This document shows, one piece after another, positions 16,161 through 40,399 of a stretch of 64,000 bases of DNA (within the stretch, counting starts at the first letter, position 1; each line of letters opens with the position of its first letter). Made by a program: the position numbers and the translations under genes. Origin of the DNA: Marsupella aquatica (lineage: Eukaryota > Plantae > Marchantiophyta); assembly GCA_973895155.1 (NCBI GenBank), contig OZ316898.1, positions 7,613,079 to 7,677,078 of the forward strand, given 5' to 3'. The notes below the pieces were generated by a model. The model saw nothing but the letters and a program-made list of their open reading frames with translations, did not search any database and was not told where the DNA came from.

Positions 16161-16169
16161 TGATATAAA

Positions 16170-19481: not shown

Positions 19482-20146
19482 GGGGGTTCTGCCACGACTG
19501 CCGGCCAGCCTTTCGCCTCCCCCTCCTGTGCATGCGCATGCGCAATCGCCGTTGAATGAAGGTCCTTTGCCAGGATCGACGGCTCTCTGCACACCAGGGG
19601 CGGACCCTGGCTCTATCCAATCCGCAGTCAATGCCTCCATTAATGAAATCCCGTGCAAAACGTTTCAGATCCCACCCTTCATATCCTCAGATCATTGGTC
19701 ATCGCTATTTTGGGCACACCGTTTTGGGTCCTGTCAGCTCGATGCAGATCATTGGGCATCTTCAGTGCAGAAATGTTCGGGACTGTCAGCTGGAGCACTC
19801 TCTCTCGATTCTCGATTCCCGACCGTCTTGCTCTGTAAAGATTTACTCATTTAGTTCTCCATTCGAGGCAAACGGGTCCACTCTCTGCTGCAGGAAGACT
19901 AAAAGGCCCTTTCTGTGGATTTGCGATCGAGGTGGCAGAGTAAGTTAACAGTATTCTTTTTTGGGGCTCAGCTTTTTTGTGGCTCAGCTCCAGTGGAATC
20001 TCTGGGTCCTTTCCTTTCCTTTCCTTTCCTTTCCTCGAGGAGCTGCCAGCGCAATCCAACGCTTTTCCCTCCGTATCATTTTCCCACAAATCCACACTAT
20101 CAGCAGTGAGTTGGTCTGTTTTTATGTCCCATGGAACTATGGAAGA

Positions 20147-20716
20147 GGCTACCGTGTCGACGGAGACTGGAGTGCTTTCTATCCTTTGCTTTTCCTGTAG
20201 AAAGGAAAGGACGGAAAACCTTTCGAATCTACGGTACACTGTAGAAGTACAATCAGGGAGGGAGACAATGATGAAGAAATTGATACGTCAGGATCAGAAA
20301 GGGGGACCAGTTACTGGAGACAAGAAATCCGAGGGCCAGGGTGGATATGGTGTTGTGGTCGAATTGCAGGAGAGGGACAGACAGTCACACACGGATTGAA
20401 TGGTTGGAGACGGTCCAGGGGCGAGCGACATGTTTTGGAGGCCCACTGAATTGGTTTGACGTGACAGGGCCAAGCACATTCAGCAGAGCAGATTGACTCT
20501 GAGGAATCTGGATGCTGTCGGTATGGACCCACGGAGGAGCAAAGCAGTCCCATAGGGACCTGCTGTTGGATTGCTCGTGTGGAGCTTTGTGATCAATGCT
20601 CAGGTTTGCTGCTTCCCTCAAGTGCTTTCACGATTCGGTAATTCCTTCCGTCTCAGGATCCTGCTGTGGTGTAGTATATTATCAGTCTCCACGCAGTTGT
20701 AGACTGTGAAAGAATT

Positions 20717-20768
<52 letters not shown>

Positions 20769-21813
20769 CTCTACACCTGTGCTGGTGGACAATTTGGGGC
20801 GGTAGAGAAAGGATTGTTGAGGCGTGAGGAGAAGTAACCTGCAGAAGCTGCACCCTCACTTTTAGAGTTGAGTAGACTATGAGAGGAGGGAAGAAGCTTA
20901 TGGGGAGGCCCTGATGATGGAGTATAGCAGCTTCAGGAGTTTGTCGTTCCTTGTTCGAAGCCAATAGCTTTGCTGCACAACTGTGAACACTCGACAGATT
21001 CCGGTCTCCGTGACAGGACGTGGCGTTCGACTTCGCTTTCAGCGGATTTTATACTGTAGTGCCCAGGGATTGAGATGTTTGCGCCCAGTTCGCGTGCCAA
21101 TGTTCAACACGTACTGGAAAACAGAAAAGTACTTCATCACGATCTCTTGAGAACTTTCCCTGGTTATGTGGTTGATGTCGATGAACGATTGATTTTTGTT
21201 GACATGGTTATTTCGGATGGCGCCTTTGTCCTTTCGGAGTTGGGTTTCCGTTTGTCTGGTGCGAGTATTACTGGCGTGGGCCCTGCCTTGCCTTGCGCAA
21301 TCTCACACAGTCATCGGGACTGAGCTGCGGAGTTCAAGGAGTATAATTAGGGTTCTGAGCTGGAGAAATCTCCGATGGTTGACTCATTTTGGGTTCCAAT
21401 AATGCAGAGCTCTAAGCAAGGTAAGGATCGCACATGTCCATCACGATCGGACAGCCGAGGGAGTGAAGGACTATGGTGATCGTAAAAGAGAGAATCAATT
21501 TGTATTTGATGCTAAGGATGAATGACCTCCGCGAGAGAGGGTTGAAGTGTTGTGGAGAGATAGGTTGCGAAGGAAGGAGTGGAAGCTTTCGTGTCCCGAG
21601 GATGGAAGAACACAAGAAAGCAAGGATTGAAGTGTCGTCTCACGAGAGAGCTCATGACGGACGATAAACTAGCACTGATAGTGGTAGCGATGCTTCTGTT
21701 TCCTTACGGTAACTTGAGAATCCAGGGGAAGGTGATTGTTTTAGAGATGCAGTAGGCCTTGCTGGTTGAGCTCACCTGAGAGCGTAGGATCTTTAGATTG
21801 AACTTGGGTTGAA
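20147..21813 (+). repeat. SAC3C upstream leader/5'UTR block, inverted-duplicated at 31657-33253
   Basis: Continuous collinear similarity to the reverse complement of 31657-33253. Examples: aaaacctttcgaatctacgg.acactgtag; tcacttttagagttgagtagactatga; aacttgagaatccaggggaaggtgattg.tttagagatgcagt.ggccttgctggttgagc. Confidence 0.93.
20719..20766. repeat. (GA)24 microsatellite
   Basis: Perfect GA run read directly from the sequence. Confidence 0.97.
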
Positions 21814-22097
21814 GATAGAAATTTCAGTCTGGGAGATGCAGTTGGCCTTGCTTTCACGAGTTTGCCTTACTAGGGTGCTGTCGCTGCGCAGGGTTGAGCT
21901 GGAACGAGATGAAACTGCGAATAGTGATTGAAGGAATGCAGTTTTAAGTCCTGGGTCATTATCATTGGGGGCGAAGACATTAACTGTGTGGTTTGGTGAC
22001 CTTTTGAGCTTCAGCTGGAAGACATGGATTGCAAGACAGAATGGTGGTTGAAGGCGGTCGTTTGTCCTGAATAGACCCCTGGATCTAGCAGACAGCG

Positions 22098-25000
22098 ATG
22101 GCGGCCAGAGGTCCACCTCCTTCTCTCTCGATACCAACGTACCCGCGAGGAGGAGGATCAGGTGGTTCTTCAGATCCTTACCGAGCTCGAGGCCGGAACC
22201 GTTCTACCGGTAACAGTGGGCCAAGCAGTAGGGATCATTCCGTAGAGGGAAGAGGAGATACCAGACGAGGACGGGAGGTAAGAAATAGTGGAGAGTTCAG
22301 AGCCAGCTACAACAACCAATATCAGGGGCAAATTTACGAACCAAATCGTAGAACTTCAGGTCAAAGCTGGGGTTATGGACGGGAACAACAAGCTGATAGT
22401 AAACAACAAGCTGATAGCAGCAACCAAGAGTTTTACTGGCGAGATGACCGATTGGGAGTTCATGGGAGGGTGCAAGGAGTTTGGGAAGACGAGGACGGTT
22501 CCTTGGGAAGCAGCGAATCATCCAGTAGCTACTCTCTTACGATTGGGGTTGACAGTCAAGGGCGAAGATCCTCTATTTCGCAGCCGCGACAGGAGAATAG
22601 CTACGGTGCTAATCGTAGGCAATCCAATGGCTATGACAGTACTCTGAGGCAAGAGAATGGCCATGCAGTAGGCAGTCAGAGACCTGGGAGTGCCAATGGT
22701 GGTTACGAGCGTTCAGGTGGCTATCGTAGATCTTCTTCCCAAAGTGGAAGCCATCGCGGTCGAACTGCGTCTTTGGAGCCCGTCCGAGGTGCTGCTGGTG
22801 CATCGAGGGTTTTACCAGGGAAAGACTCTGACAACCCTAAGGAGGTCGAGGCATTTGGTTATGGCAGAGAGCTTGAGACTTTTGGTTCCCAAAGCAGCTT
22901 AAAAAGCCGCAGCACTAAGTCTGCAGGTGTCTTCATCCCACCAGCAGAGGCAAGACGGCAGGGGCTCAAGGATGAGGCTATAAATGGTCGAGATGTGGTA
23001 GCAAGCACCTTTAAGGGTTTCAAAGAAGGAGATATAAGGCAGAGTTTCGCTAACGACAGCGTTGGTCAAGGGGACGGGTGGAGGAGTAGTGGTAGTTCTA
23101 GTCCCAATGGTGGTAAGAGCAGTATCCGTGAGAAATCTCAAACACGTACGAGGGCAGAAAGCACTATTGTAAGAAAGGAGTACAACGTGGATGCACATAG
23201 AATGGATGATTACGAAATCGCTCAAAAACTTGTTATGAACGATAAATCTCGGATCGTTGATGGACACCATGGAGAGAGGATCCACTTTCGTCCCACGAAA
23301 GACGAAGATGGAGAGCTGCTCATTCCCAGCCCGGGCATCACAAAGTGGAGCTCTGGTTACACAATGAACCACAGTTCTGAAAGGGAGAGCGATTTATCCG
23401 GCGAATTAGTGTCACCGAGTCGTAGCTCGTTCTCGAAGAAGTCTTTGAGCGGGAGGAACAGCTACGACAGGGTGAAAAGACGAGATCTGTCCGATCAATT
23501 GCCGGTCTTCAGTCCCAGCTCAGAAGCTAGTAAGGCTGACACCAAACTAGAGAGCAGCATTGGTCCACTGTCTCGAGAGAGTTCCAGGAGAGTGTCACTT
23601 GCGAGCCCCATGTCAGATTTTGCTACCAAAGAACTTGGTTTGGATGGGAACAAGGATCGGAATGCCGTGAAGCAGCAGCTTCCTGATAAAACACCGGAGT
23701 CTGCTAGTGTAGGGATGCCTCGGACCCGGAGCACGGACTGGTACGAGATTTGTTTGAAGGAGGAAGAAGAGGAGGAAATGCTGGCTAGAACTAGGAAGAT
23801 CGACGAAGAGTCCAACCTTGGCAACCCGACGCTCACCCGCAATGGAGTCAGGAATTTCAGCAGGACGGGCAGTACGGATCCAAAGCGGGGAGAATCGGCA
23901 GTCTTTAGCCTGAGCTTGGTTCCAGGGGGCAACTATCGAGAGTCAAAAAACAACCTGGAGAAAGGACGGGCGAGGGAGAGGTTCGTACGAGGCGATGCTG
24001 CCGATTTAGCGCAGCCCAATTCGGCCAGTGGCCAAAGGCATGCAGATGCTGGAGGTAAACAGACGTTGTTCACGCCCTGGAACGCCCTAGAGCGTCTACC
24101 CGCTTCCAGGAACGTACCAAGCGGTGCCCCAAGGCCGAAGTCTAGTCATCAACATTCTGAGAATGGCCCTGTAGAGCCACGGGAAAGTGTGGTGCAACAG
24201 GAGAATCTGAGGATATCCATAGCAGGTGGGCGACAAGAAGCACGAGGGAGAAGATCAGCAACTATCGAACCTGACGAAGCAGCGAATTGGAGGGCAGAGA
24301 GGAGACCATCAAGAGATCATTCTAGGGAGTTCGTGAGACCTGAAGTATCTCAGGAGTCTGTAGCAGGCCCATCAGGACGAGCCAGACCTACTCTCACAAA
24401 TGAAAGAGGCATCGTTCCAGCCTCAGTGGTTATGCCTGGAGGTTTGCTCAACAGAGGGAATGGGTCAATTAGGCCGGCAACATTTTATCGTGCCTTACAT
24501 GAAGCTGTGGGTGGAGATGAGGAAGCTCTGCCTCACATTGTTGGGACCTGTCCTGACATGTGTCCCAGTATGTTCCTCCCTCCTTTTCCGTAACCTCTTT
24601 CATTCGAAGACCACTAGATAACTCCGTAAAAATACATTGTCACACTTGAAAGGTCGAATGGAATCTTGTCCTGATTACATTACTGAATGTCGCGTAAAAT
24701 AAGGGTGAGCTCCCAAAAGCAGAGCTCCCAAAAGCAGCATGACAGGAAATCTCGAAATGAACAACTATGGAGCTACCAAATATCATGTACATTTTCGCTG
24801 AATTTTTCCGTTTCTAGCATGCGGAAGCAGAGGTCACCTCCTGTAAGAATATCAAGCTCTGTGTGTACTTGCAACTGTATAGTATGCAGCTAACGTCAGT
24901 TAGGCCTCCAATTGTACCAAAGGGGGAAGCTAAAACAATACCTTCGTTTGACCTGCTTCTTGTGGTATCAGGTAAAGAGAGATTGCAGCGGGAGAGATTG

Positions 25001-27028
25001 AGAGACTTGGCTGTCTTTGAGCGTGTAAGTGGTGACATGAGGAAAACTTCCAAGGACCTTGCCGTCAAGAAGGTATGAAGTCGTTTTATCTAGACAACTG
25101 TCCACAGCATCCTCTTCAGTCTCTTCTTTGTGTAACAACATCCCAGAACTTTTTCTCATGTTGTCTCTCGGTAGGCTGATTCCATTTAGTGAAGTTGATG
25201 TCTATCTCTCCTTGGTGCTAATTCTCTGAAGAAGCGGATGTGTACCTATCAACCCATAGCTTGTCACTAGTTTTTGGCCTTTTCTATGCCCTATTAATCC
25301 TGTGAAGATAAGGGATGTCTCACGTTTGTAGGAGATGTGGTAAATGAAGAAACTATTCAGTGAAAATTTTAGTCAATGGTGCTTGTCTGCCTTTCAGCTT
25401 TGGTGTAGTGATGGAAAAGGCACTTTTTTGCTTCGATATAATATTGTTTTTCAGGTGGTCAAGAGAATACCATACTTAATGCTTTTCTCCACAGTTTTGC
25501 AGGACTGTTGTAGCTTCAGAGCTGGAAAGTACAGATGTTCGTCCTCTACCTGTGTTATTGAGAACACAGCAATACCTCCTGGGTCTTCTCGACGACCCTG
25601 AGTTCTCATTTGACATTATCCACAATTTTCTTTTCGATCGAACGCGAGCAATTAGGCAAGAGCTTGGAATGCAGCGAGTTTTTGATCATCAAACCATCAT
25701 AATACATGAAGAAATTGTAAGTATTTTGTGGAGTTATAGAGTCTACGGCCCTTTTTGAGGCTAAGATGCTTTCAGACCTTCTCGAGAAACGCTAGAAGAT
25801 ATGCTTGCAGCTTCTTAATCATGATCTAGTAGCAGCAATGTGTTCCAATTGATGAGGTCTTCTTTTCTACCGAATTCCTTTCATCTTATCATGACATTGT
25901 ATCAGCGATGAACCTCCTTGATAGCTGGTTGCGTCAACCCTGACATGTTCGTCTTGTTATCAACTGTGTTGCTCATATACTTTCATCTATTGTAGGTACG
26001 ATTTCACATTATATCAGAGCATGAACTGCGAGACCTAAATAGAAAGAGATCCAAGCAATTCGACACTCACCTGAATCTCCAACAGCTATCAAAATCTCTG
26101 CATAACCTTCTAAACCTTTACATTAGTCTGGGAGGAAATGGTGAAACACATTCTGTAAGCGAGGCCGAGTTTCATGCATATTATGTGCTCTTGAATCTCG
26201 GAAACCATGGCCGATTCCATGCTGAGCCTCTCTCGCTATGGTTTCCAAACGTATCCTCTCACGTGCTCGAAGGAGCTCCAATGCAGTTTGCAAGGAAAGC
26301 TCTGAGGTAATGTCTCTTCCTCCCTCACCCTCTACAACCATTCGATATTGTCTCTAGCTCAGTGGAAAATGTGGACAACAGGATTTCACCTTTCTATTTG
26401 TGGTTTCGGTCATCTCTTATTTGTCTCAATGTTTCTCTCTCTCACAGAGCTAATATGAGACCTAGCACTACCAGAATTGGGGTCCTTATGTGTACAGTTT
26501 TCAGTGAGAGAGGATTCATTTAAGGTCCGCAAGAATTGTGCCAGATGGATGAAGTAAGGTGTTTGTGCTTTTATTGGTAGCAATCAGTGCTGATCAGCTT
26601 TTGTATGCAATTAACGTGTAAATTCGTCGGTTGGCAGATTCTACAGGAGTAACAACTTCATAGGATTTTTCCGGATGGTGAAGGAAGCTACTTACTTGCA
26701 GGCCTGCCTCTTGGAACTAAATTTTGATTCTGTTCGTGCTGCGGCTTTGGAAACTCTTAATGTCGCAGAGTACAGGCGTCATCCTTATCCTCTATCGGAG
26801 TTGGCGGAACAATTGATGTTAAAGGAGAACGAGGTTGACGAGCTCTGCATGTATTTTGGGCTTGCTACAGGCACAGACGCTTCCAGTGAAAAGCTCTGTC
26901 TTCTGGCAAAGCAAGGTCAATTTTCCAGACCAGAAAAGGGAGATCTTCCACAACACGGCTGCCCTCTGATTGATGATAAACGCGCTCCCACTTTATATCA
27001 GGAGGTGAAAGCTTTGAAAGTAGTTTAA
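22098..27028 (+). CDS. SAC3C: SAC3/GANP/THP3-family protein, SAC3C type, ~1164 aa, with a long disordered N-terminal extension
   Basis: Exons 22098-24567, 24972-25072, 25495-25716, 25996-26306, 26638-27028; all GT-AG and phase-compatible, 3495 nt in total. Motifs: [100 protein letters not shown]. Confidence 0.92.
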
Positions 27029-27754
27029 CAACAACATTTTAGAATATGCAGACTGGCAAGTCTTCCTGTCCTGTCATGTAGAAGAGCTGGTCCTAGTCTC
27101 CAGCCCAGGGACGCATTGCAAAATTGCTTACTGCATCCCTCTAATTTGTGAAAGTCACTGGTAGACAGCTTGGTCCTCACACATTTTTGTGAGTTTGTGT
27201 GAGAGAACCCAATGAAAATCATTGTAGGCCTAACCTGTAAAGGTTGTACAGATTTGCAAACTACATGTCTAGCTTCTGCTACCTTAGGATGAACTGTTGA
27301 TGGACCGAATTGAAACTTGTTTGAGGAATACATTTCATTTGTACACTTTGACACGTCCAAATTTTGACAGAAGAAACGTTTGGATTAAAATCATTCAAGT
27401 TTTAACGTGCTATCATCCTTTTCCTCTCTCTTGTTTCCACCTTTTCTGGAGACTCGTGTAAGTTCTAGGCATCATTACCAGGAATACCAGCATACAGACA
27501 ACTCCACGAGAGGGTTGCAATGAGGGGCCTGCAATGAAACTCTGTAATTGCATTGCTGAGTCCAGATGATATCTTCTGAAAAAGCTAAAGAATCAGTACT
27601 AGATTCTATCATAATGTGGGCGTCAGATTTTACCAAGGTGCGTCTGACCCATCTGCCTGTGGTGGTATTGTATGATACTAGTGGTGTTTAATTTATTTTC
27701 ATTTTTTGCTGATTTCATATTTTTAGTGCATTTGAAGGACTCCAGATGGGTAGC

Positions 27755-27840
27755 TCGTTCCCTAGCCAAATTCGCTAGCCATAAGAAGAGTCCCAAAATT
27801 AGATTATACTAACCGGGTTTTTGTTTAGCTAGGGATTAAC
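27755..27840. repeat. Short dispersed repeat, inverted homologue of ~33650-33730
   Basis: gctagccataagaagagtcccaaaattagattatactaaccgggtttttgtttagc versus the reverse complement gctagcaaaaagagaagtcccaaaaatggatgttatcaaccaggttgttgttagc. Confidence 0.55.
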
Positions 27841-30370
27841 CTTGCTATTTTAGTGAGGCTTTTTTTGCTCATACGAGTAAATGTTTTACTGTCTGTTTGT
27901 ACGCTACAATTACCCCAAACACAAATCTTCACAAGTCATAATTATTTTCTGAATGTGATGGATTGCCGAGATGATGATGCCCGTTTGGATTTGATAAAAG
28001 TCTCCACAAATTGACCTGTCAACTTCCCAAAAACCGATCAGCTAAACCCACACAAATGTGAAAAATCCAGCTACACCCACAAAATGTGAAACCTTCAGTT
28101 TCATGCAGTCTTTTGCGATCCAATCTTCAGAGAACTCTTGCGACATTACACTCTAAAAGTAACTAACTAATATTGACTGCTATCAAACTAATGCTGTTTC
28201 TGAAGGGAAAATCAAAAGATGTCCAGAGCAATGTACCTAAGTTATCAGGTATTTCCTGCACTCTTTTCATGGATGAATGAATGGAGAAACCGGTACTAGT
28301 CGCCTCAAATTTCTCCAGTCAGATACTTGCAGTTATCTCTAATCCACAAGTGTGGAAACAGACTGGAGGATATCCACATGGCACTTGAATTGAGTGGGCA
28401 CTTAGATTAGAAACGGGTAATAAGAAATATTACGAGACTAGATAGTAGGGTGAACAGAGTTAGCAGTGTTTAGTAGTACGGCCGTCTCGAAAACTTACAA
28501 TCCCGATCGGTCACTTTTGTCCGTTTGAAGAATTTATATGCTGCATTCTCTTCAAATCGACGACGTACTCTGTTGGGTTTGTATTCTTTGCCGACTCACA
28601 ATCTTGCTAGAAAGAAGACCTTGAGTTGAAGCAGACCGTATAGGTCTTTGGCAACGATCATTGTACAAACACCACCCGTGGATGTCGTCTTCCCAGCTAA
28701 CCGTCTACATCTGTACTGCAGCTATTCATACTAGAAGTAAATGCACTTGATAAAATTCACTAATGATGACCCAAACGCGCTCGTCAGTGGACACACAAAC
28801 AGTGGCAAATTAACAATATAGAACTAAAAATGATCAAAACCCGGTCAAGAAGCTAAATTGTTTTTAGAATGGAGCACAAGTCTTGCTAGGCTGCAGAAAG
28901 TAAGGCATAGAAGTCCATAATTTCTCTTGTGGTCGTTGTCACCCAGGATCATCATAACTTTTGAATCACGTATGTCATCAAGAGGTAAAGATTGTGTTCT
29001 TCCAGTATTTAGACATCGAAATGAAGACGACTTAATTTCGATGGAAAAGTCTGCAATCGAATCATTTGATGTTGAGCGTGTGCGAAATAAATATCCTGTC
29101 TGGGACACCTTCACAATCTTGACGTCCCTCCTTAATCCAGATTCCAAGTGCACCTCCTTCGTTTTGATCGAGTCAACTTTATATTCTGGAGCTCCAAGTG
29201 AGTGAGAATCAAAAGAAACAGGTCTTTTTTGGAGCCCCTAAACTCGTGCATTAACGAAAAAGGACAGCTAGAGGGACCTTGTAAAGAGATGCACTGGGAA
29301 TAAGCTGCAGGTGATTTATTGAATTGAATCTCAGGTACTCCGATTTCCTCGCCCTTTATTCTGTTTGCCACTTCTTGTTGTACAATACCCACTTGTTTTC
29401 GCTCTTCTACCAAACACCTGGCCGGATTCCCCAATTGGATTTTGCTGCAGCATCATCATCTTCGAAGCTCAGATTCGAAATCAGGTCATTGCCGAGGATG
29501 TTGCAAGCTCCTTTCGTTGACTGCTATAAATGAATCCTGGAACTGTGGCCATGATTGGGTCAATCAGGATATCTAAAAAATAGGCTGTAATGGAATACAA
29601 ATTTTGTTCGGATATAACTATCTCAACAGTTGAGTAGCATGCATCTGCACTATCGAACAGAACAAAGCATGATGAGTGCTTGAAAACGAAGTTGTTTTAA
29701 GTTGATAGGAATCTTTCGAAACAATCCTGTAAACAATAGAAAATGTGGCAGTCGAAGGCCTTGGATGAGACAACACGAATCAGAAACATGAAGCAAAAAA
29801 TGCCTCGTAAGGATTGTTCCCAATTATCTAGAAAGGTTCCACAAGTGACAGATCCTGCAACTTCTCTCTAAGTGATTTCTTGACAAAGATCTTGCATCAT
29901 GTCACGTATGTCAATTTAGAAAACCTAACGTAAACCGGCAATAATCTACTTTGCCTTGCGACCTTGTAGCTTCAGATCGAATACAACACATCTCTGCTAT
30001 TGCGGTTAGAGAAATCACGGTTCACAAAAAAAAGTGAACCAAACAACGGTGCAAGCTCTGCCCAGATTACTAAATCTAACAGACCAGTAACAGTGACAAG
30101 TAAGGGGAACATGCTGCTGACAAGTAACCAGTAGGACCGCTCGGTAGCTTTTGAATGGTAAGCTGACTATCAACTGATGGAAAGGACCTTTAAATATCTG
30201 CATTGCCCACGGTAAAATTAAGCAGCTGGCAAAAGGGCGTGACCTTAGATGCTAAAAACAAGGCTCTAGCAGCAAGCTTGGGCCATTTTGTACGTAGCTG
30301 TCTTATCCACGGACAGTTCTAGATCCTCTGCTTTTACCGGCCTGTTCTTGTCTCAGTAGATACTGGGCCT

Positions 30371-31615
30371 TTATATCAAAAGGTACGTACTACTCGACGG
30401 AAAATTAGCTTCATCTTGATCTCCATAAGAACCTCCTTCGCCCATACCGGGCAATGGACCAGGATGAGTTCCGGACGGCAAACGTGGAATCCTCAGTCCT
30501 CTCGGAAGGTGATACTGTGTTGGGTTTGCTCCAAACCCTTGGAAGAAATCCCCAAAGGGATGAGAAAAAGAAGGTGGCCGGTGCATGACTCCGGGAGTAA
30601 ACACCTCAGCAAGAAATCGTCTCTCCGCGTCTCTCCTAGCTTCTTCACTTCTCTTTCTGTGCTGAAATTCCCTCACAAAGGCACTCTTCCACCCACGGCT
30701 CCCAGGAGCTCTTTCCCCACAGGGTCCAAACTCCTCCTTGTACTTCTGCTTCCAGAGCTCCTCACTTGAGGTCAGGAACCTAAATTCCGAGCAAGCACGT
30801 GCAAGATTCGCCAACACAACAGGCGGAAGCGAATCCAAGACTTTAATTTTCAATTCTGTGGGGAGTCTCAGGAGGGATGGGGGAGGAGGAAGCCCAGTTT
30901 TCTCACACATGAACATCAGCAACGGTAGAGAAAGAGAATCCTTGACCTCTTTCCATAATTCAAAAATGTCACGGAAAATGTTCTCCCCCATCGAAGTTGC
31001 TGCTACCATCCGAGCTCCATCTCCAGAATTATCTGCGTTTGCAACCTTACCACCCACAGCTGGCTCCATGACTGACTCATTATCCCGCTTGCTCACATTA
31101 CTGCTGCTGCTGCTCGCTCCAACAGCAACAAAGTTTCCCAATTTGAGATTTTCGTGCAAGAACTTCGACACAGACAAACAAACCCGATGAGGACTCCCAT
31201 CTGTGACAGCACCGTAAACCACAACGGTATTCCCGACCATCAGGCATCGGAGAAGAACCTCTTGTCCTAACTCCCGAGTAGTCTCCCGTATGCTGAGCTC
31301 AGGGAGTGTGTATGTGAGATTGACAAAGCCAGTACCACTCGACCCAGATGGAAGCTCATACCCACCTAGGGTACGAGGCCCTTCCCATGCTGCATTATTG
31401 CTCTTGGATCTACCAGCTTCAATCCCCACAAACCCAGTCTCCAGCATCACAGCATGCACAGCAAGAACTAAGAACATAGAAGGCTGACGGATATTCTCAA
31501 ATTCCGCAATCAGGACTCGTTGGAGAAGATCCGGAATGGGTACCAAACGATGTCCTCCTCCTGCACTTTGTGCCATTTCTTGCAGCGGCCCTTTTGAGTC
31601 TATTTGCATATCCAT
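30371..31615 (-). CDS. SKIP22/FBXO7-like F-box protein (PI31/FP domain + F-box + Pro/Gly-rich tail) lacking the N-terminal ubiquitin-like domain; copy 1
   Basis: 414-aa ORF: LVLAVHAVMLETGF (FP/PI31 domain), FELWKEVKDSLSLPLL, F-box PPSLLRLPTELKIKVLDSLPPVVLANLARACSEFRFLTSSEELWKQKYKEEFG. A possible splice acceptor ttgtag lies 6 nt before the ATG. A possible donor (GTACGT) near the stop could mean an extra 3' exon. Confidence 0.88.
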   Translation of the reverse strand: MDMQIDSKGPLQEMAQSAGGGHRLVPIPDLLQRVLIAEFENIRQPSMFLVLAVHAVMLETGFVGIEAGRSKSNNAAWEGPRTLGGYELPSGSSGTGFVNLTYTLPELSIRETTRELGQEVLLRCLMVGNTVVVYGAVTDGSPHRVCLSVSKFLHENLKLGNFVAVGASSSSSNVSKRDNESVMEPAVGGKVANADNSGDGARMVAATSMGENIFRDIFELWKEVKDSLSLPLLMFMCEKTGLPPPPSLLRLPTELKIKVLDSLPPVVLANLARACSEFRFLTSSEELWKQKYKEEFGPCGERAPGSRGWKSAFVREFQHRKRSEEARRDAERRFLAEVFTPGVMHRPPSFSHPFGDFFQGFGANPTQYHLPRGLRIPRLPSGTHPGPLPGMGEGGSYGDQDEANFPSSSTYLLI

Positions 31616-31656
31616 GACAGGCTACAAGTTCAAGACCTGCTCTGTATGTTTCTTCC

Positions 31657-33253
31657 CTTCAACACAAGTTCAATCTAATTGGCTCAACCAGCAAGGCCCA
31701 CTGCATCTCTAAAGCAATCACCTTCCCCTGGATTCTCAAGTTACAGTAAGGTCAACAGCAGCATGGCTACAACTATCACTGCTAGTTTTATCGTCCGTCA
31801 TGAGCTCTCATGTGTGACGAAAGCTTTCTTGTGTTCCTCCCTCCTCGCGACACGAAAGCTTTCCAGCACTTCCTTCGCACAGTATCTCTCCACAACAATT
31901 CAACCCTCTCTGGAGGAGATCAATCATCATTAGCATCATATACTAATTGATTCTCTCTTTACCATCACAAAAGTCCTTCACGCCCTCGGCTGTCTCTCGG
32001 TCGGATTACCCTGCTCAGAGCTCTGAGTTATTGTAACCCAAATTGAGTCGACCATCGGAGACTTCTCCAGCTCAGAACCCTAATTATCCTCCTTGGAACT
32101 CCGCAGCTCAGTCCCGATGACTGTGTGAGATTGCACAAGGCAAGGCAGGGCCCACGCCAGTAGTACTCGCCCCAGACAAACGGAAACCCAACTCCGAAAG
32201 GACAAAGGCGTCATCCGAAATACCCATGCCAACAAGCAAAGCAATTCATCGAAATCAACCAGATGACCAGCAAAAGCTTTCAGAGATTGTGATGAAGTAC
32301 TTTTCTGATTTCCAGTACGTGTTGCACACTCGCACACGAACTGGGTGCAAAGATCTCAATCCCTGGGCACTACAGAACAAAATCCGCTGACAAGAAGTCG
32401 AAGGTCACGTCCAGTCACGGAGTCGGGAATCTGTCGAGTGTCCACAGTTGTGCAGCAAAGCTGTTGGCTTCGAACAAGGAACGACAAACTCCTGAAGCTG
32501 CTATACTGCATCATCGGGGCCTCCCCTCACCTCCTTCGGTCCTTTTCATAGTCTACTCAACTCTAAAAGTGAGGGTACAGGTTCTGCAGGTTACTTCTCC
32601 CCACGCCTCAACAATCCTTTCTCTTCCGCGCCAATTATCCAAATTGTCAACCAGCACAGGTGTGCAGCAGGACTCTCTCTGTCCGAATTCTTTCACAGTC
32701 TACAACTGCGTGGAGACTGATAAGATATCACACCACAGCAGGATCCTGAGACGGAGGGCATCACCGAATCGTGAAAGCAATTGAGGGAAGGAGGAAAGCT
32801 GAGCATTGAACACAAAGCTCCACACGAGCAATCGAACAGCAGCTTCCTATGGGACTGCTTTGCTCCTCCTTGGGTCCAACCCACAGCATCCAGATTCTTC
32901 AGAGAGTGAATCTGCTCTGCTGAATGCGCTTGGCTCTGTCACGTCAAACCAATTCATTGGGCCTCCAAAACATGTAGCTCGACCCTCGATCGTCTCCAAC
33001 CATTCAATCCGTGTGTGACTGTTTGTCACTCTTCCTGCAATTCGACAGCACAACACCATGTCCACCCCTGGCTCTCCGATTTCTTGTCTCCAGTGACTGA
33101 TCTCCCATTCTGATCCTGGCCAATGAATTTCTTCATCATTGTCTCCCTCCCTGGTTATACTCCTACAGTGTGCCGTAGATTCGAAAGGTTTTCAGTCGCT
33201 TTGTTTCTACGGCAAAGGCAAAGGGCAGAAAGCACTCCATCCACACGGCAGCC
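31657..33253 (-). promoter_or_regulatory. Copy of the SAC3C leader serving as the upstream region of F-box copy 1
   Basis: Inverted homologue of 20147-21813. It ends ~40 bp upstream of the F-box ATG (31615) and has the same orientation relative to its gene as the SAC3C copy. The regulatory role is inferred. Confidence 0.75.
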
Positions 33254-33350
33254 GGGTCATTCTAGAGTGCCAGTAAACAGTAAAACCTTTCGTCTTCTAT
33301 GTCCAACTTTCTCCTTCTTTCCTCTTTTATATCCAACTTTGTCCTTTGAT

Positions 33351-33508
33351 GAGGGATTTGCTTGGTGGGACCCCAAATGAAAATGTTTTACTTGATAGGA
33401 CCCCTGAGTGATCCACACGTTGATTTACCTTGAATAGACGGACCTAAACTTTCAAGGGTCCAATTAAGTAAAACATTTTCATTTGGGGTCCCACCAAGCA
33501 AATCTCTC
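33351..33508. mobile_element. 158-bp Mutator-like MITE (fold-back) with 9-bp TSD
   Basis: ~57-bp terminal inverted repeats gagggatttgcttggtgggaccccaaatgaaaatgttttactt.. / ..aagtaaaacattttcatttggggtcccaccaagcaaatctctc. Perfect TSD tcctttgat at 33342-33350 and 33509-33517. Confidence 0.9.
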
Positions 33509-33940
33509 TCCTTTGATTGGGTTTCTTGTCTACTTTCTCCTTCTTTCCTCGTTTATATCCAACTTTCTCCTTTGATTGGATTTCTTGCCTGAGTGATTTC
33601 GTCTCCAGGTTGGGCACCCTTCGTTTTTTGGCAGTTTGTAAAACTGCCTGGCTTGCTAACAACAACCTGGTTGATAACATCCATTTTTGGGACTTCTCTT
33701 TTTGCTAGCTAATGCGGTAGCCATTTGGAGTCGTTAAAAAACACAAAAAAATTTAAAAGACAGCGAAAAGGAAAAGAAATTTAAAATTACTAGTGTCTCG
33801 CTAACAACACTCTCCTTGCTTTCAAAATTCCTGTTTGCTAGCTTGCATTATACAATACCTCCACGGCAGCCTCTTCCTCGGGATATAAAAACACAGCAAC
33901 TCACTACTGCTGAGTGTAGATTTAATTTGTGGAAAATAAT

Positions 33941-34284
33941 ACCAGCTGGCTTTGGTCAGTTGGCCGAGATAGCCTAGAATCTAGAGGTGCCAGGTTCAAT
34001 CCCCCCTCCACGGGCCAATCCCCCCCTCCATGCAACGGGGGTGGAGGGTATATGTGGATGTGTGGGTGGGGGGTGTAGTGGTGAGAATCCTGGTTTCTCC
34101 TCAGCCCCTGGCTAGCCCACTTTGGGGCCCTGGTTCAGCACTCTCTCCTTCCTGGTCTGGGTCCTTGTCGGATTCCTGGGTATTGTCCCCCCTTAGTTGT
34201 GGGCTAACCTACAGTGGTGCAGACTCCAAAGTAGCACGTCTATCTTGTTGGATGGGTCTACTTTCTGCTTTCAAGGCAAAAAAA
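33941..34284 (+). mobile_element. tRNA-derived SINE, second copy
   Basis: Box A tggtcagttgg, box B ggttcaatccc and tail ttcaaggcaaaaaaa. Collinear with the 6656-6957 copy. Possible short TSD aaaataa. Confidence 0.85.
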
Positions 34285-35104
34285 TAACACGGAGAAAAAG
34301 CGTTGGACGGCGCAGGCAGTTCTGCACGGAAAGGACCCGAGATTCAATTGGAGTATCAGCTGAGCCACAATAAAAAAATAGTGTTATCTAAGTCTGCCAC
34401 CTCCATCATCAATTCAAAGAAAAGCCTTTTACTTCTTCTGAGGCAGAGAGTGGATCCATTGGCCTTGAGCAGGGCATTTCAAAGCTTAGAATTTGATGGA
34501 CCTTAGGGGTGGGGGGCTTTTACAAGAAGGTGGGGGCCTTTCACCCGTCTCTCCATCCAAAGCAAAGCTGATGGCCAGTTCCCCTGGGAAGTGCCACGGA
34601 CACCCTCTGTCTAATGAAGGCCACAGTGACAGCCAGCCAGCACCAACCAGGGCCTTGAGCAGGCGCCAGGCTTAGCCCAGGGCCGGAAACCAACCCGCCA
34701 GGACCAGCGTAAGGGTTTTACCTTTTTGCCAGAGTGGCAAATGTCCAGTGTGTGAAGGAGAAGATGCTTAAAATATTCCTTATTTGATTATTTTTCTGAC
34801 CATCAGATCTCCCTATATTTTAGAATGACCATTAGATCCTGGCTAATGGGGCCTGTGATTAGGTGGGACACTGGCTAATGAGAAGGAAAAATACTAGCAA
34901 AGTTTTTCCAAAAGTGGCAAAAGCTTTTTGGGGAGGTGGAATTTGGCAAATTTTTGCCACTAAAAACAAAACTGGCTGTCGGGGCAACAAGCTAGATGAA
35001 TTACCAGGTGACAGGGGAAATGGGAAATGGTGGGTCAAAACAAAATGCACAAAAATAAAGGAGATACAAAATGCGCAAATATAAAGGAGATATAATTTGT
35101 AGCG

Positions 35105-35780
35105 TAAATAACAAACTACAATACACTTTTCACCTGGCCTAGCTTGCCACGACTAATATCTTATACATGTGTTACATATTAGAAATTTGATGCACAATTA
35201 GGTAACCAAGGACAAACAAAAAAAACATGTCACAAATAACAGGGGAGTAAATAATAAAACGTTGGCAGTGATGAGTAAGATGAAGAGCCATGATCGATGG
35301 AACTATTACAGTGTGCAAGTTAGTAGAATCAAAAAGAAAGACCTAGACTTAAACCTTAGAATTTACATTGCAAAAATATTTGGAGCTTTTAAGTACCCCA
35401 AATTAATTTATGTAATTGAGCTTGCCAAACAATATATTATTAATTATAACTTAGTTATTGTGTGAACTGGGATGTCACTATGGTAAATGGACCTGTGGAT
35501 CAGGTATGGAGTAAAACACAAGTGACTTAAACTGTTTGAATCTCTTCATCTAATTTGCAGAAGACTTTGGATTCTTTCTTTTATTTGGACTTGAACTATA
35601 TCTTGATAATGTACGAACTCTATGCCGTATGACTTGTAATCCAAGAATGAATTATAATCATTGCAAAATTTATGCTATAATCTTGGCTATAATTCACTAT
35701 TAAAGTTGAGATTAAAGTCTACCAGTCGTGACCTACTCTGGCCCCACAGTGAAGCCAAAGGCCAATATTTTCTTGAAACA
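35105..35780. repeat. Dispersed repeat, inverted homologue of 15681-16160
   Basis: Reverse-complement similarity to 15681-16160 with internal insertions. Confidence 0.8.
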
Positions 35781-38665
35781 ATGGGAGCGGAGCTTGGTAC
35801 CTAGAACCAATGTTTGTGGAATGCGAGGTGGAATGTTCACTTAGTTGGTAATTAACCCTTATGCTTTGGTTTGTGAAGAAACATACACAGGCCCAAGCTG
35901 ATTGTGCTCCCTTTTAGAGCCTTGTTCTCGAGAAAGGTAGAAAAAGATAGTAGACAAAGACATTACTCAGGGGAAGTACTGATCTACGTTCAAGGAGCTA
36001 AATGACTGTTGTAGTGACATTCTAGGAGTTTTTGCTCTAATGTGAAACATTTGTTTTAGGCGAAATAAAAAGTTATTGGTGTAAGACATGTTAGGTGAGG
36101 ATAGAGGTTCTTATTGGTAAATTAAATCCATCAACTCTTTGTATCCATCACAGCAGTGGTTATGTTAATCTTCCTTTGGTGTAGAGGTGTGCACTCCTTA
36201 CAAGAGACAAAAAAGTTATAATCACATAATTGGACGATTGACAGAGATTAGGATCTAAACCCCTGGATCTAAACTGGCAGAATGGTTTAGTATCTCAAAG
36301 CACGAGTTGATTTTGCCTAGTTGCAAGTCAGTCCATTCGAGCTAAAAACACAATTCAAGGTCTGCAACATCTTAATTGTGAACCCTGTCAATTGGAAAAA
36401 AAGGTTCCATGAATATTTCACGAGTAATCCAATGCATCTCTCCTACAATATGAGATTAAATTAAACATGGAAACCTGGGAGAGAGGGACAAGAGGGACAT
36501 TGTTTAGAGTCAAAGACATTATATAACTATATAATTGACAGTTTGCCCACGAGAGCACAAGTCATGGGGAGGAGTTGCAAGAAAGGAAGAGTACTCTATT
36601 CAGTCTAAGGTGGCAGCTGTGTGTCTGGCTAAATTTTAGTTTTGAATTGGCCACCCAGCTTGTTAGATTATTGCATGAACCACCCTGGCCAATCTATATG
36701 AATCAGATTGAGGACAATGACCTTCCATCATTAACAGGGGAGGCCAGAATTTTATGAAATAATGTAGTCATTTAGAAGTATGAGGTTGCAATATGTTTTA
36801 TGCAAACTTATAAACAGACAATTTCCATTCCAGGTGATCACATTCCTGCCAATTGTGATTCTTGTACAACCACCTACATACAGTGGTTTAAATGATGATA
36901 TTTTACTTGAGATATAGCCATGAATTGAAGGTACACTTATTTACAACATCACTTAATTCCAAGGATCCAACTTGATCTCTTTCTATTGCACATCACCCTT
37001 ACATAACAAAGGACCTTTGGTGCTATTTAAGAAACACCATTAATACGAAGGTAAGGGCAATGCCATGTAAAAAAGTGCAGCAAGATCTGACATTGTTTCT
37101 TTCTATGAATGGTGGTGTGAGCAGGCAAAACGAGAGAGACATATCCTGTCCAACTGAAACCTATCTGAAACAGTATATAGAAGAGTTCTTGGCTGGGTAC
37201 ATACGTCGCTTCACTACAACTTTTGGCCATAAAGAGCCAGCTTGAACTCATGCCACGTAGGCTCATTCTGTGACATGCTATACATTCAACAAGAGCTCCT
37301 CTTTGGAAAAGGGAGCCGACCATCAAATCAGGAGGATTAAATGACACATTCGGGAAGTAAATTACAGGTTGGTTGAGATCTCGGTCAAGATACATACCAG
37401 CCTGCAGACATCACATCCCCGATCACATTGACATTTATACTTGCACTTGAAACTATCCCTCTGGATTAATTCTGCTTTTCCAATTCTATCATTTCCTCAG
37501 TATTAATGGAATTCAGGTTTGGCATCGATCAAACGGGCAGGCTGGTCTACATCATAACGAAGATTTAAATGCCTCAAATTAAGTCCATCAAGGCTTCCAT
37601 GTGCCCCAGCTCCTGTCCTCATATTGCTGCAAATTCTAAGTGCGTATATATATATTCCTGTTCTCCCTGAATGGCTTGCTTTCACTCCATTCTGCAAATA
37701 TGTACAGATGCATCTCCAGTGAGAATGCACAATCATAATAACATGTAACATTCCACCAATAAAGTCTCCTAGTTCTCCTTCAGATCGAGGCTTCAATTTT
37801 GTTTGAAGCTGTTTGGGCCTAAAAGTTGATTTTGATGCCGCAAAATCTTGGGGATGCACATACATGCTCAACAAAACCCATAGCAACAAGAGTCACATAT
37901 GACAGTTCAGAATGACTGTCAAATCAATTGCCACATTTCTGAATGTTGCAAGATATAGACATTAGGGACCTTGTGAGGTTCAGTTTCTGCAAATAAAGAA
38001 GGAACAAATTCCATGAAGGTTTTTGCATTAATAATAGAACTTGGCTCCCCATTGATTTTCATTTCTCTTATTTGAGATAGGAAAAAAATCCAAACTGCCC
38101 AGGAACTTAAAACCAAAACTTATACCGACAACTACATCACCCATCTGTTTTCTGCAAGTTCTCTTCTTCCTGAAAATTAAACAAACCGTGCTGTCACGAA
38201 ATGGTCTCCAAGCCTCATAACTCTAATCCTTCCAGTCAGTGTGGATACCTTGTCATGGGCTTGTACCATAGCTCAACCACTACTTGGGTTGTCATTCATT
38301 TGACTCACCTCATTATCTACCCACTGTCCTATGTTTGCTATTGGAAAAAACCATACCTTGCCTCAGTAGTAAGGACCCAATCTTGGAAACCCCCCTCATC
38401 CCTCCATAGAGCATGTGTACGCCAAGCCCCCTTTATCACCAATATCTTCCCTGTCTACGTTCATGAAACTGGGTCTCGGGAATATAATGGTTACAGGTTG
38501 CCATGCATGGCCAGTCAAACATCATTTCTATTAAACCTTTGGGGAAAATAGGCTTCATCTTGATCTTCATAAAAGCCTTGTTCGGCCATCCCGGGCAATC
38601 CCGCGGGCAATGCACCGGAATGATTTTTCAATGGCAAATGTCAAATCCTAAGTCCTCTTTAAAGG

Positions 38666-40060
38666 TTATATATATTCTGTCGGGTCTGCTTCCAACGCTT
38701 GGAAGAAATCCCCAAAGGGATGAGAAAAAGAAGGTGGTCGGAGCATGACTCTGGGAGTAAACACCTCAGCAAGAAATTGTCTCTCTGCTTCTCTAATAGC
38801 TTCTTCACTTCTCTTCCTGTACTGAAATTCATTCACAAAGGCCCTCTTCCATCCACTACCTGCAGGAGCTCTCTCCCCACAAGGTCCAAACTCTTCCTTG
38901 TACTTATGCTTCCAGAGCTCCTCATTTGACGTCAGGAACCTAAATTCGGAGCAAGCACATGCAAGATTTCCCAGCGCAATTGGCGGAAGCAAATCCAAAA
39001 CTTTAATTTTCAATTCCGTGGGGAGTCTCAGGAGTGATGGGGGAGGAGGAAGCCCATTTTTTTCACACATGAACATTAATAGTGGTAGAGAAAGAGAATC
39101 CTTGACCTCCCTCCATAACTCAAAAATGTCACAAAAAATGTTCTTCCCTATCAATGTTGCTGCTATCATCCGAGCTCCATCTCCAGAATTATCTGTGTTT
39201 GCAACCTTACCATCCACAACCGGCTGCATGGTTGAATCTTTATCCCGCTTGTTACCATAACTGCTGTTGTTGCTCGCTCCAACAGCAACAAAGTTTCCCA
39301 ATTTTAGATTTTTGTGCAAAAACTTTGACACAGACAAACAAACCCGATGAGGACTCCCATCTGTGACAGCACCATAAACCACAAAGGTGTTCCCCACCAT
39401 CAAGCATCGGAGAAGAACCTCTTGTCCTAACTCTCGAGTAGTCTCCTGTATGGTGAGCTCAGGGAGTGTGTATGTGAGATTGACAAAGCCAATACCACTT
39501 GACCCAGATGGAAGCTCATATCCACCTAAAGTCCAAGTCCCTTCTTGGGTTGCATTATTGCTGTTGGATCTACCAGTCTCAATCCCGACAAACCCAGTCT
39601 CCAGCATTACAGCATGCACAGCGAGAACTAAAAACATAGAAGGCTGTCGGATATTCTCAAATTCTTTAGTCAACACTCGTTGGAGTAGGTCTGGAATGGG
39701 TACCAAATGATGTCTTCCTCCTCCACTTGGTGCCATTTCTTGCAGTGGCCCTCTTGCATTTATTTCCATTAATGTGACCGGCCCGTGTTCTACCATCGGT
39801 GGATTTGACGATGGGACAAGAATGACACCACCTGGAGAACTTGTGTTGTCCAATTCCCGTGTAGTTTTTAGGTCCATAGTGGTAGAATCTGAACTTGGCA
39901 CCTTAGTTTCTGGTTGCTGCCCTCCTGCAAGAGATGCTGCTTGTCTACAAGCAGCTGCTGCAGCACAAAGTTCCCTTCTTGTAGCGGGAGTGCTCACACC
40001 TCTCCCTCCATGGTTTGGGGTTCCCGCTTGTTGGGGAGGAATTGGCTCAAGCCCATCCAT
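38666..40060 (-). CDS. SKIP22/FBXO7-like F-box protein, copy 2 (open FP + F-box frame; C-terminus truncated); possibly a pseudogene
   Basis: Highly similar to 30371-31615 from ~39780 downward. The first in-frame ATG is at 40060 (the ORF track starts at a TTG). An ATAT-slippage-like change gives a stop at 38666, although homology to copy 1 (..GATCAAGATGAAGC..) continues to ~38545. Confidence 0.7.
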   Translation of the reverse strand: MDGLEPIPPQQAGTPNHGGRGVSTPATRRELCAAAAACRQAASLAGGQQPETKVPSSDSTTMDLKTTRELDNTSSPGGVILVPSSNPPMVEHGPVTLMEINARGPLQEMAPSGGGRHHLVPIPDLLQRVLTKEFENIRQPSMFLVLAVHAVMLETGFVGIETGRSNSNNATQEGTWTLGGYELPSGSSGIGFVNLTYTLPELTIQETTRELGQEVLLRCLMVGNTFVVYGAVTDGSPHRVCLSVSKFLHKNLKLGNFVAVGASNNSSYGNKRDKDSTMQPVVDGKVANTDNSGDGARMIAATLIGKNIFCDIFELWREVKDSLSLPLLMFMCEKNGLPPPPSLLRLPTELKIKVLDLLPPIALGNLACACSEFRFLTSNEELWKHKYKEEFGPCGERAPAGSGWKRAFVNEFQYRKRSEEAIREAERQFLAEVFTPRVMLRPPSFSHPFGDFFQALEADPTEYI

Positions 40061-40164
40061 TGAGTGCACCAAGGCTCTGGCAACCCTTGACTACTCTATA
40101 GGATTTGCACTTCCAACAAGTCAAGAGATGGGCTCCCAATAAGACTAAGGGGAGAAAAACCTCC

Positions 40165-40399
40165 TTAATTGATAATGTAGTATACAAGATCCCCAATTTA
40201 TTGTCACCCAAAGAAAGGAGGACACTGCCAGGGCCCTGGATCTTTTCCTCTAGCGTCTTATTGAAGGATAGGCTGAATGAGGAGGTTAGTAAGGACACCA
40301 GTGGCCCTAACCCTGTAAGGTAGAGAGGAGTGGAATTTCCACCCTAGTTGTTGACCCCCGCTTGCTGCACGCCCTCACTCTCAATTTGATGCTGGCCAT
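40165..40399 (-). pseudogene. Frameshifted N-terminal ubiquitin-like domain of the SKIP22-like gene (copy 2)
   Basis: Three frames give MASIKLRVRACSKRGSTTRVEIPLLSTLQ / LGPLVSLLTSSFSLSFNKTLEEKIQGPGSVLLSLG / GDLVYYIIN*. This matches the recalled SKIP22 Ubl pattern MKLRLR..TL..L..LSLN.K....L.SLG..SGDLIYF. Confidence 0.72.

Follow-up and report, generated by a model that had tools for sequence, protein, structure and literature searches.

This locus raises the question of how a truncated F-box gene came to lie against an inverted copy of DNA belonging to another gene, and whether a new gene may have arisen in this way. The window, that is, the whole 64-kb stretch of DNA that was analysed, holds a SAC3/GANP-family gene and two related F-box sequences (copy 1 and copy 2). 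The initial annotation had reported that a block of ~1.65 kb upstream of the SAC3 gene recurs inverted near copy 1. Self-BLAST of the window matched positions 20168-21771 to 33239-31682 (85.2% identity over 1,625 columns with gaps, E = 0) and gave an extra short match between the same arms (21793-21814 vs 31678-31657). In the global alignment, arm A (20148-21816, + strand) and its inverted recurrence, arm B (33253-31655), were 88.7% identical (179 mismatches in 1,580 aligned columns, with 19 gap events), the longest run of perfect identity being 44 bp. These two comparisons bore out the inverted recurrence at the coordinates reported, and the spacing of ~40 bp between the block and the copy 1 ATG was also found (inner end at ~31655, ATG at 31615-31613). 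Arm B has the same polarity with respect to copy 1 as arm A has with respect to SAC3. No third copy of the block was found in the 64-kb window, which contains two copies only.

The SAC3/GANP-family gene downstream of arm A (22098..27028, + strand) was delimited by tblastn of the Calypogeia protein P0083, so that its bounds are approximate. It was assessed piece by piece. Five coding pieces were obtained (~22098-24569, 24974-25120, 25492-25719, 25975-26307 and 26636-27028, approximate limits taken from the alignment pieces), with 68-89% identity per piece to P0083 (1,176 residues). Pfam detected SAC3_GANP (PF03399) on 26675-27028 with an E-value of 1.2e-11, a domain also carried by the orthologue P0083. 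The first exon comprises 831 codons. The Marchantia orthologue has 1,115 residues and is annotated as “nuclear mRNA export protein SAC3,” without a subtype. The gene had earlier been labelled SAC3C, a subtype for which the 831-codon first exon and the 1,176-residue orthologue offer no support; since Arabidopsis SAC3C is ~400 residues long, the label looks unlikely.

The comparison with Calypogeia fissa polarised the two arms. The inner ~700-900 bp of the block aligned colinearly with sequence preceding the C. fissa SAC3 orthologue: arm A positions 20929-21623 were colinear with L002 8593-9311, and this same stretch also aligned with arm B positions 32499-31824. On the SAC3 side, positions 21847-22094 aligned with L002 9716-9996, continuing into the SAC3 coding sequence, and had no counterpart in arm B. 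Because the inner part of the block is colinear with the Calypogeia SAC3 upstream DNA, this comparison shows the SAC3-side arm to be, on sequence grounds, the ancestral one and the F-box-side arm the derived one. Arm A, as ancestral DNA upstream of the SAC3-family gene, spans 19863..21816 (+ strand; alignment with arm B and Calypogeia colinearity), with the well-matched core at 20148-21816 and a weaker outer part at 19863-20147. The core of arm B, its inverted derived copy, lies at 31655..33253 (- strand; alignments polarised by Calypogeia).

The block had been described as the “SAC3C leader.” The Calypogeia alignment confirmed it as SAC3 upstream DNA, of which a leader would be only a putative part, and the block leaves out the proximal 284 bp before the SAC3 ATG. 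This unduplicated proximal DNA (21817..22097, + strand) aligned with L002, is absent from arm B and contains a 9-codon upstream ORF (22041-22070) that has equal length and position in Calypogeia (L002 9936-9965). Hence, the conserved short upstream ORF was not copied with the rest. Apart from a GA microsatellite, no alignable conservation was seen in the Marchantia SAC3 upstream DNA (L003), where the short upstream ORF is not conserved either. On the sense strand, G exceeds C from ~20150 to the SAC3 coding sequence, with a matching onset of the skew in Calypogeia at ~2.3 kb upstream of the start codon. We have set this skew aside as a marker of transcription start, as C > G is the rule at angiosperm transcription start sites (PMC555766), whereas G > C was found here. 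Rfam (over the whole window) and tRNA scans found nothing.

At the sites common to all three sequences, Calypogeia assigned 25 changes to arm B vs 12 to arm A. Of the nine runs of at least 9 bases identical between arm A and Calypogeia within the block, eight are kept in arm B at 89% or more, and a conserved 14-bp patch after GCAAGGTAAGGA has been lost from it. The roughly twofold faster change of arm B, together with the lost patch, suggests that constraint on it has been relaxed.

Positions 20147 and 33253 had been taken as the outer end of the duplication. This did not hold, as a 608-bp insertion sits there (33254..33861, no strand assigned) and homology extends beyond it. The insertion is later than the duplication, since arm A has a single target site (20148-20157). 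It is flanked by a 10-bp direct repeat, CACGGCAGCC, at 33244-33253 and 33862-33871 (0.07 matches expected by chance), and contains a hairpin with 57-bp arms at 33351-33508. Arm B continues at 33862..33942 (- strand), matching arm A 20073-20156, and is then interrupted by a second insertion (33943..34280, no strand assigned), which belongs to a dispersed repeat with another copy at 6660-6954. Its outer part follows at 34281..34468 (- strand), matching arm A 19863-20082. With both insertions removed, homology between the arms reaches 19863 in arm A and 34468 in arm B, and the inverted copy is at least 1.95 kb long. A weaker inverted similarity (70-72%) was also seen between 15681-16172 and 35780-35093. 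We have not counted it as part of a longer duplication, because a dispersed repeat would explain its lower identity and a further partial match at 17421-17483 just as well.

Such repeats, and an insertion flanked by its target site, in or beside arm B could be read as signs that the block itself is mobile: an element inserted independently at both places, or a Pack-MULE- or Helitron-like element that captured the F-box fragment. Mutator and CACTA elements abound in the genome, and copy 1 is an internal gene fragment, as is common among captured fragments. We nevertheless consider this very improbable. Upstream of SAC3 in Calypogeia the block has a colinear counterpart, and this colinearity continues into the gene; no terminal inverted or direct repeats surround the block or the composite (27000-38300), the only ones being those within the small insertion; Pfam detected nothing, and so no transposon domains, in the ORFs of the block; and the window lacks the third copy that a mobile block might have left. 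The initial annotation had named a transposon inserted twice as a possible refutation of its model, and this failed on the orthology of the block to Calypogeia host DNA.

Copy 1 (30371..31615, - strand; defined by its ORF, Pfam and alignments) is an open frame of 414 codons with FP (PI31_Prot_N) and F-box domains. Its orthologue in Calypogeia (L001) is intronless and encodes 673 residues. Nucleotide alignments placed the parent-derived fragment at 30399..31622 (- strand), corresponding to orthologue residues 212-616, with 83.7% nucleotide identity to L001 10633-11837. The homology to copy 2 (30399-31609 vs 38543-39769, 86%) was seen to begin in the middle of the copy 2 frame, as had been noticed earlier. 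At the other end, the last 57 orthologue residues are missing and the final 8 codons are novel. The FP domain (PF11566, 3.2e-05, 24.0 bits for a cut-off of 21) occupies residues 41-157, before the F-box motif at residues 248-292 (Pfam F-box-like 1.8e-08, F-box 1.7e-05). The N-terminal ubiquitin-like domain is absent, with homology starting at residue 212 and an in-frame TAG three codons before the ATG. The predicted copy 1 product is hence a truncated derivative of the FBXO7/SKIP22 family, not a full-architecture member. Its start codon, which had been described as new, aligns with the codon for Calypogeia Met-214 and is an ancestral internal methionine; both -3 and +4 of the start context are occupied by G. 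An exact look-up of the protein in public assemblies gave no record, and none of the proteins recovered exceeded 70% identity. An origin of copy 1 by retroposition was discarded, for neither the 3' end of the gene nor any trace of poly(A) is present in the fragment.

The join between arm B and the F-box fragment falls in a zone no longer than ~33 bp (31623..31655, - strand; local alignments to arm A, Calypogeia and copy 2), with the in-frame TAG at 31624-31622. The fragment covering residues 212-616 directly abuts the inverted duplicate, which agreed with the earlier proposal that copy 1 is a mosaic of SKIP22-like internal CDS and SAC3-derived upstream DNA. The predicted copy 1 protein itself is not chimeric, as SAC3 coding sequence takes no part in it. 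Because the second fragment is non-coding upstream DNA, chimerism would go no further than regulation or the transcript. Assemblers can be misled by repeats and inverted duplications, and a false join of two unrelated places, a danger that the initial annotation had itself raised, would give a junction of this kind. We regard such an artefact as extremely improbable: divergence between the arms (11%) and between the F-box copies lies in the range 11-14%, with private indels and the two insertions besides, as in distinct loci, and 40 bp separate the junction from the open frame, whose start lies in a good context.

Copy 2 (38256..40421, - strand; alignment with the Calypogeia gene) represents the parental locus, with the whole gene and short native flanks. 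Orthologue residues 1-672 were found at 40399-38369, and the flanks aligned with Calypogeia over 22 bp on the 5' side and ~107 bp on the 3' side, whereas copy 1 aligned for residues 212-616 only. Copy 2 is thus taken as the parent because the whole gene and its native flanks are present. It has five frameshifts, all at its two ends (residues 29, 69, 94, 577 and 624), and its core frame (38666-40072) is open. In the maximum-likelihood tree, the two copies were sisters inside the liverwort clade (100/99 support), and the F-box duplication is, as judged from the tree, later than the split from Calypogeia. The outgroup has a single intact F-box gene and SAC3 upstream DNA colinear with arm A, as the mosaic model anticipates, and its SAC3 and F-box orthologues lie on different scaffolds. 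No tblastx matches revealed synteny with Calypogeia beyond both genes in the four 10-kb flanks; parentage consequently rests on gene completeness and native flanks. The whole copy 2 gene is 74% identical to the Calypogeia orthologue at the nucleotide level, and over the codons common to both copies, copy 1 differs from Calypogeia at 15.9% vs 20.0% for copy 2.

The distance between the arms was 0.123, or ~0.06 per arm, and the synonymous branch of copy 1 was 0.052 (95% interval 0.003-0.107). These values are compatible with an equal age of the arm and F-box duplications. Over 1,223 bp, copy 1 shows neither a stop nor an indel of its own; ~7 indels would be expected at the rate of the non-coding arms (Poisson P ~0.001, assuming equal age). 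Its branch dN/dS was 0.59 with an interval of 0.23-9.2, indistinguishable from neutrality. Neutral substitution would leave the frame without a stop with a probability of 0.35, so the case for selection comes down to the missing indels, an indirect indication that selection may have maintained the copy 1 frame.

The structure could be as described and copy 1 still have been dead on arrival, silent or incidentally transcribed, with the SAC3 DNA having no regulatory consequence. This is possible, although we find it doubtful. The dN/dS and stop-free values just given leave room for it, as do the faster change of arm B with its lost patch, the uncopied proximal 284 bp of SAC3 upstream DNA and the insertion bordering the core on its outer side. 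Copy 1 has lost both of its ends, and most partial duplicates, the kind to which it belongs, are non-functional (PMC3449122). Purifying selection still acts on the core of copy 2 (ratio 0.25, interval 0.15-0.42), whose role copy 1 therefore need not have assumed. Against this stand the missing indels, judged from equally old non-coding arms, and the FP and F-box domains, both intact. Moreover, copy 1 is the slowest branch and the copy closest to the orthologue, whose GC content it has kept (0.50 vs 0.507), whereas copy 2 has gone down to 0.45, with an excess of GC-to-AT changes that deamination may explain.

A lineage-specific local duplication joined two nearby templates, and we consider it probable that copying proceeded by template switching and that copy 1 is expressed with SAC3-derived upstream regulation. 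From the interior of the intronless SKIP22/FBXO7-like gene, a piece of 1.22 kb was set 8.2 kb off in the same orientation, directly adjoining the inverted SAC3/GANP upstream copy of at least 1.95 kb. The outcome is the 414-codon open frame starting at the ancestral Met-214, with the FP and F-box domains kept and the ubiquitin-like domain and last 57 residues gone. A single event, or events close together, may have copied both pieces through template switching in replication or break repair. If copy 1 is expressed, the SAC3-derived DNA would be its putative upstream regulatory region and its product a putative SCF adaptor without a ubiquitin-like domain; a role of arm B as promoter or leader is something that we only infer. 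The co-expression or co-silencing of the two genes and the inversion of the ~10 kb between the arms that the initial annotation had suggested would be speculative. Unlikely, in our judgement, is a more far-reaching outcome in which copy 1 would be a working F-box successor on SAC3-derived regulatory DNA, co-regulated with the TREX-2 scaffold gene, and/or the 1.6-kb inverted arms around the convergent pair would give hairpin or small RNAs that couple the silencing of both genes.

The locus offers a clean, datable liverwort case, with both parents present and polarity fixed by an outgroup, of a gene fragment gaining the upstream DNA of another gene via local rearrangement, and may be of use as a model case where gene birth in bryophytes is studied. 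It also opens the question of the role of an FBXO7/SKIP22-type protein without the ubiquitin-like domain. Any biological effect of copy 1 depends entirely on its expression.

Copy 1 follows a known route to new genes, that of the partial or chimeric duplicate, and does not add a new class of mechanism. Pack-MULE and Helitron transposons capture gene fragments, and here too an internal gene fragment was relocated beside repeated DNA; however, the composite has neither terminal repeats nor a target-site duplication, and what is repeated is orthologous DNA of the host. Recognised classes of new gene include both partial duplicates with recruitment and chimeric duplicates from two duplicated fragments (PMC3449122). 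As in these, copy 1 lacks part of the parental CDS and gains 8 codons from its flank, is joined to a duplicated fragment of the locus of a second gene, and is revealed as the derived copy by its parent and a single-copy outgroup. It departs from them in that its second fragment comes from upstream of a gene, is non-coding and has been inverted with respect to its source, and the case is known from sequence alone.

The Drosophila gene Hun, a young chimeric gene formed by illegitimate recombination (PMC1463047), likewise combines a DNA-level partial duplication with coding loss and a novel 5' region, and recruited flanking sequence into its coding region. Unlike copy 1, which lost both ends and lies only 8 kb away, Hun lost 3' coding sequence only and moved to another chromosome, and its testis expression and selection have been demonstrated. 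Human FBXO7 isoform 2 has the FP domain, the F-box and a proline-rich tail without the N-terminal ubiquitin-like domain (PMC3037939). One gene produces it through alternative 5' exons, whereas here copy 1 is truncated and copy 2 carries frameshifts; it shows that a natural FBXO7-type product without the ubiquitin-like domain can exist.

Comparison of the window, which is of liverwort origin, with itself revealed one strong inverted pair (20168-21771 vs. 33239-31682, plus 21793-21814 vs. 31678-31657), in agreement with the initial annotation, which had placed an inverted repeat at 20147-21813 and 31657-33253. Arm A (core 20148-21816, +) precedes a SAC3/GANP-family gene (22098-27028, +), and arm B (core 31655-33253) has the same orientation towards the SKIP22/FBXO7-like F-box copy 1 (30371-31615, -) as arm A has towards SAC3. 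In a global alignment over 20148-21816, the two arms were 88.7% identical (179 mismatches in 1,580 aligned columns), with 19 gap events. Identity was roughly uniform (0.84-0.94 per 200 nt), the longest perfect match being 44 bp, and the self-comparison detected no third copy of this block within the 64-kb window.

The outer edge previously proposed for the repeat (20147/33253) proved to be the site of a later insertion in arm B, with homology extending past it. This insertion (33254-33861, 608 bp) is bordered on both sides by the 10-bp repeat CACGGCAGCC, present once in arm A, and contains a strong, near-perfect hairpin with 57-bp arms (33351-33508, z-score -8.8). Weaker relatives occur in the window at 18902-19050, 17004-17158, 27674-27832, 57653-57740 and 57990-58073, and this small, non-autonomous element with its 10-bp target duplication probably represents a miniature transposon family. 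A dispersed repeat of ~300 bp accounts for a second insertion in arm B (33943-34280); its other window copy (6660-6954) is 72% identical to this one. With both insertions taken out, homology reached A 19863 and B 34468, and the copied segment is therefore at least 1.95 kb long; the final 284 bp upstream of the SAC3 ATG are absent from it. Additional inverted similarity (15681-16172 vs. 35780-35093, 70-72%), colinear with the arms and far more diverged, is either what remains of an inverted duplication that was older or longer, or two copies of a repeat family.

We have then compared the block with Calypogeia fissa, the source of the closest protein to the window SAC3 gene (68% identity). The Calypogeia SAC3 orthologue (1,176 residues; locus L002) and the F-box orthologue are on separate scaffolds. 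Upstream of the SAC3 orthologue, L002 8593-9311 aligned in order with A 20929-21623 and B 32499-31824, and L002 9716-9996 matched A 21847-22094 but not arm B, running into coding sequence. Hence, the ancestral SAC3 upstream DNA is arm A, of which arm B is a copy. This colinearity identifies the block as host DNA and makes a transposon origin, the main alternative considered in the initial annotation, very unlikely. No terminal repeats bounded the block or the composite of copy 1 and arm B, and a domain search of the block ORFs returned no transposon domains. Changes polarised by Calypogeia numbered 25 on arm B and 12 on arm A. Within the block, eight of the nine runs of at least 9 bases identical between arm A and Calypogeia were at least 89% kept in arm B, the remaining one (A 21416-21427) being interrupted by a 14-bp deletion. 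A 70-bp piece of the dispersed repeat also matched Calypogeia DNA at L002 3822-3891, 6 kb upstream of SAC3.

The claimed homology between the F-box copies was likewise recovered as a direct duplication (30399-31609 vs. 38543-39769, 86%). The closest protein was again from Calypogeia (70% identity), an intronless orthologue of 673 residues (P0001, L001 10001-12022). Copy 2 (38256-40421, -) covers residues 1-672 at 40399-38369, i.e., the entire orthologue length, and the alignment also takes in 22 bp of 5' and ~107 bp of 3' flank; because the alignment spans the whole orthologue and its native flanks, copy 2 is the parental locus. Copy 1 covers residues 212-616 only (31621-30398), in an unbroken frame of 414 codons; its homology ends at 30399 (residue 616), followed by eight novel codons and a stop at 30371. 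Copy 2 carries frameshifts in the ubiquitin-like region (residues 29, -13; 69, -1; 94, -1) and in the tail (577, +4; 624, +8), while all four indels in its core (residues 111-576) are in frame; an ATG near 40060 may still allow translation of a protein that lacks the ubiquitin-like domain. Pfam FP (PI31_Prot_N) and F-box domains are present in both copies. Maximum-likelihood analysis, which included seven relatives from bryophytes and lycophytes, recovered the copies as sisters (100/99), postdating the Calypogeia split.

At the inner junction, homology to arm A is firm to ~31655 and F-box homology is firm from 31622, possibly 31644, leaving at most ~33 bp of unclear origin. Three codons upstream of the copy 1 ATG (31615-31613), an in-frame TAG (31624-31622) ends the frame. 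This ATG had been taken for a new start codon; since it aligns with Met-214 of the orthologue, it was recruited. In copy 1, a partial duplicate of the F-box gene abuts an inverted copy of SAC3 upstream DNA.

The arms differ by a Jukes-Cantor distance of 0.123, and half of it (~0.06) agrees with the synonymous branch of copy 1 (0.052, 0.003-0.107). The dS between the F-box copies (0.29) was strongly asymmetric, the copy 2 branch reaching 0.237 (0.161-0.322). These values would fit a single duplication or two in quick succession. Private substitutions number 95 in copy 2, 2.2 times the 44 of copy 1; GC-to-AT transitions, with an enrichment at CG sites, account for 53 of the 95 (56%), vs. 10 in copy 1. 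The GC content of copy 2 is down to 0.45, that of copy 1 and the orthologue being 0.50, and we infer deamination of methylated cytosines. Despite this GC loss, the core dN/dS of 0.25 (0.15-0.42) indicates that the core of copy 2 has been under purifying selection. For copy 1, the dN/dS of 0.59 (0.23-9.2) was not informative. Copy 1 has no private indels in 1,223 bp, vs. ~7 predicted from the non-coding arms (P ~0.001, assuming equal age with the arms). These missing indels would be a better argument for constraint than the missing stops, as a stop-free frame (P = 0.35) is weak evidence alone.

The templates for both pieces of the composite would have lain 8-18 kb away, and copying would have involved template switching or else break repair with ectopic copying. 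The SAC3-derived DNA would be the sole evident upstream region of copy 1, with translation beginning at the former Met-214. Humans have a natural FBXO7 form that lacks the ubiquitin-like domain (PMC3037939), which makes a similar copy 1 product plausible. The 15 upstream ATGs within 700 nt before the SAC3 ATG argue that much of the block may be promoter or intron, not mature leader. Co-expression, co-silencing and inversion via the arms are speculation.

The label "SAC3C" was unsupported by gene length. Outside the block, a 9-codon upstream ORF (22041-22070, +) is located 57 nt upstream of the SAC3 ATG. Its Calypogeia counterpart (L002 9936-9965) has identical length, start/stop positions and first six residues (MVVEGG), and a perfectly conserved 19-nt run encloses the ORF; it is not conserved in Marchantia. 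Over 20150-22100 (+) and L002 7700-9950, GC content is raised and sense-strand G persistently exceeds C (skew +0.2 to +0.37). The excess starts abruptly at the block core edge, ~1.95 kb before the SAC3 start codon, and Calypogeia shows a matching onset ~2.3 kb upstream. The sign of this skew is the reverse of that at angiosperm start sites.

Elsewhere in the window, a 635-codon ORF upstream of the SAC3 region (9890-11797, -) had no match in Pfam, and a Copia-type LTR retrotransposon (59653-63548, -) has coding sequence spread over several ORFs (gag, zinc knuckle, integrase, RVT_2). A GUN4-domain gene (51467-52312, +) and amino-acid transporter exons (Aa_trans, 1390-3663, -) are ordinary neighbours.

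Genes of this kind, whether partial duplicates that recruited sequence from their flanks or chimeras of two duplicated fragments, are common and have been thoroughly reviewed (PMC3449122). The copy 1 composite belongs to this known class, of which Drosophila Hun (PMC1463047) is a close studied case.
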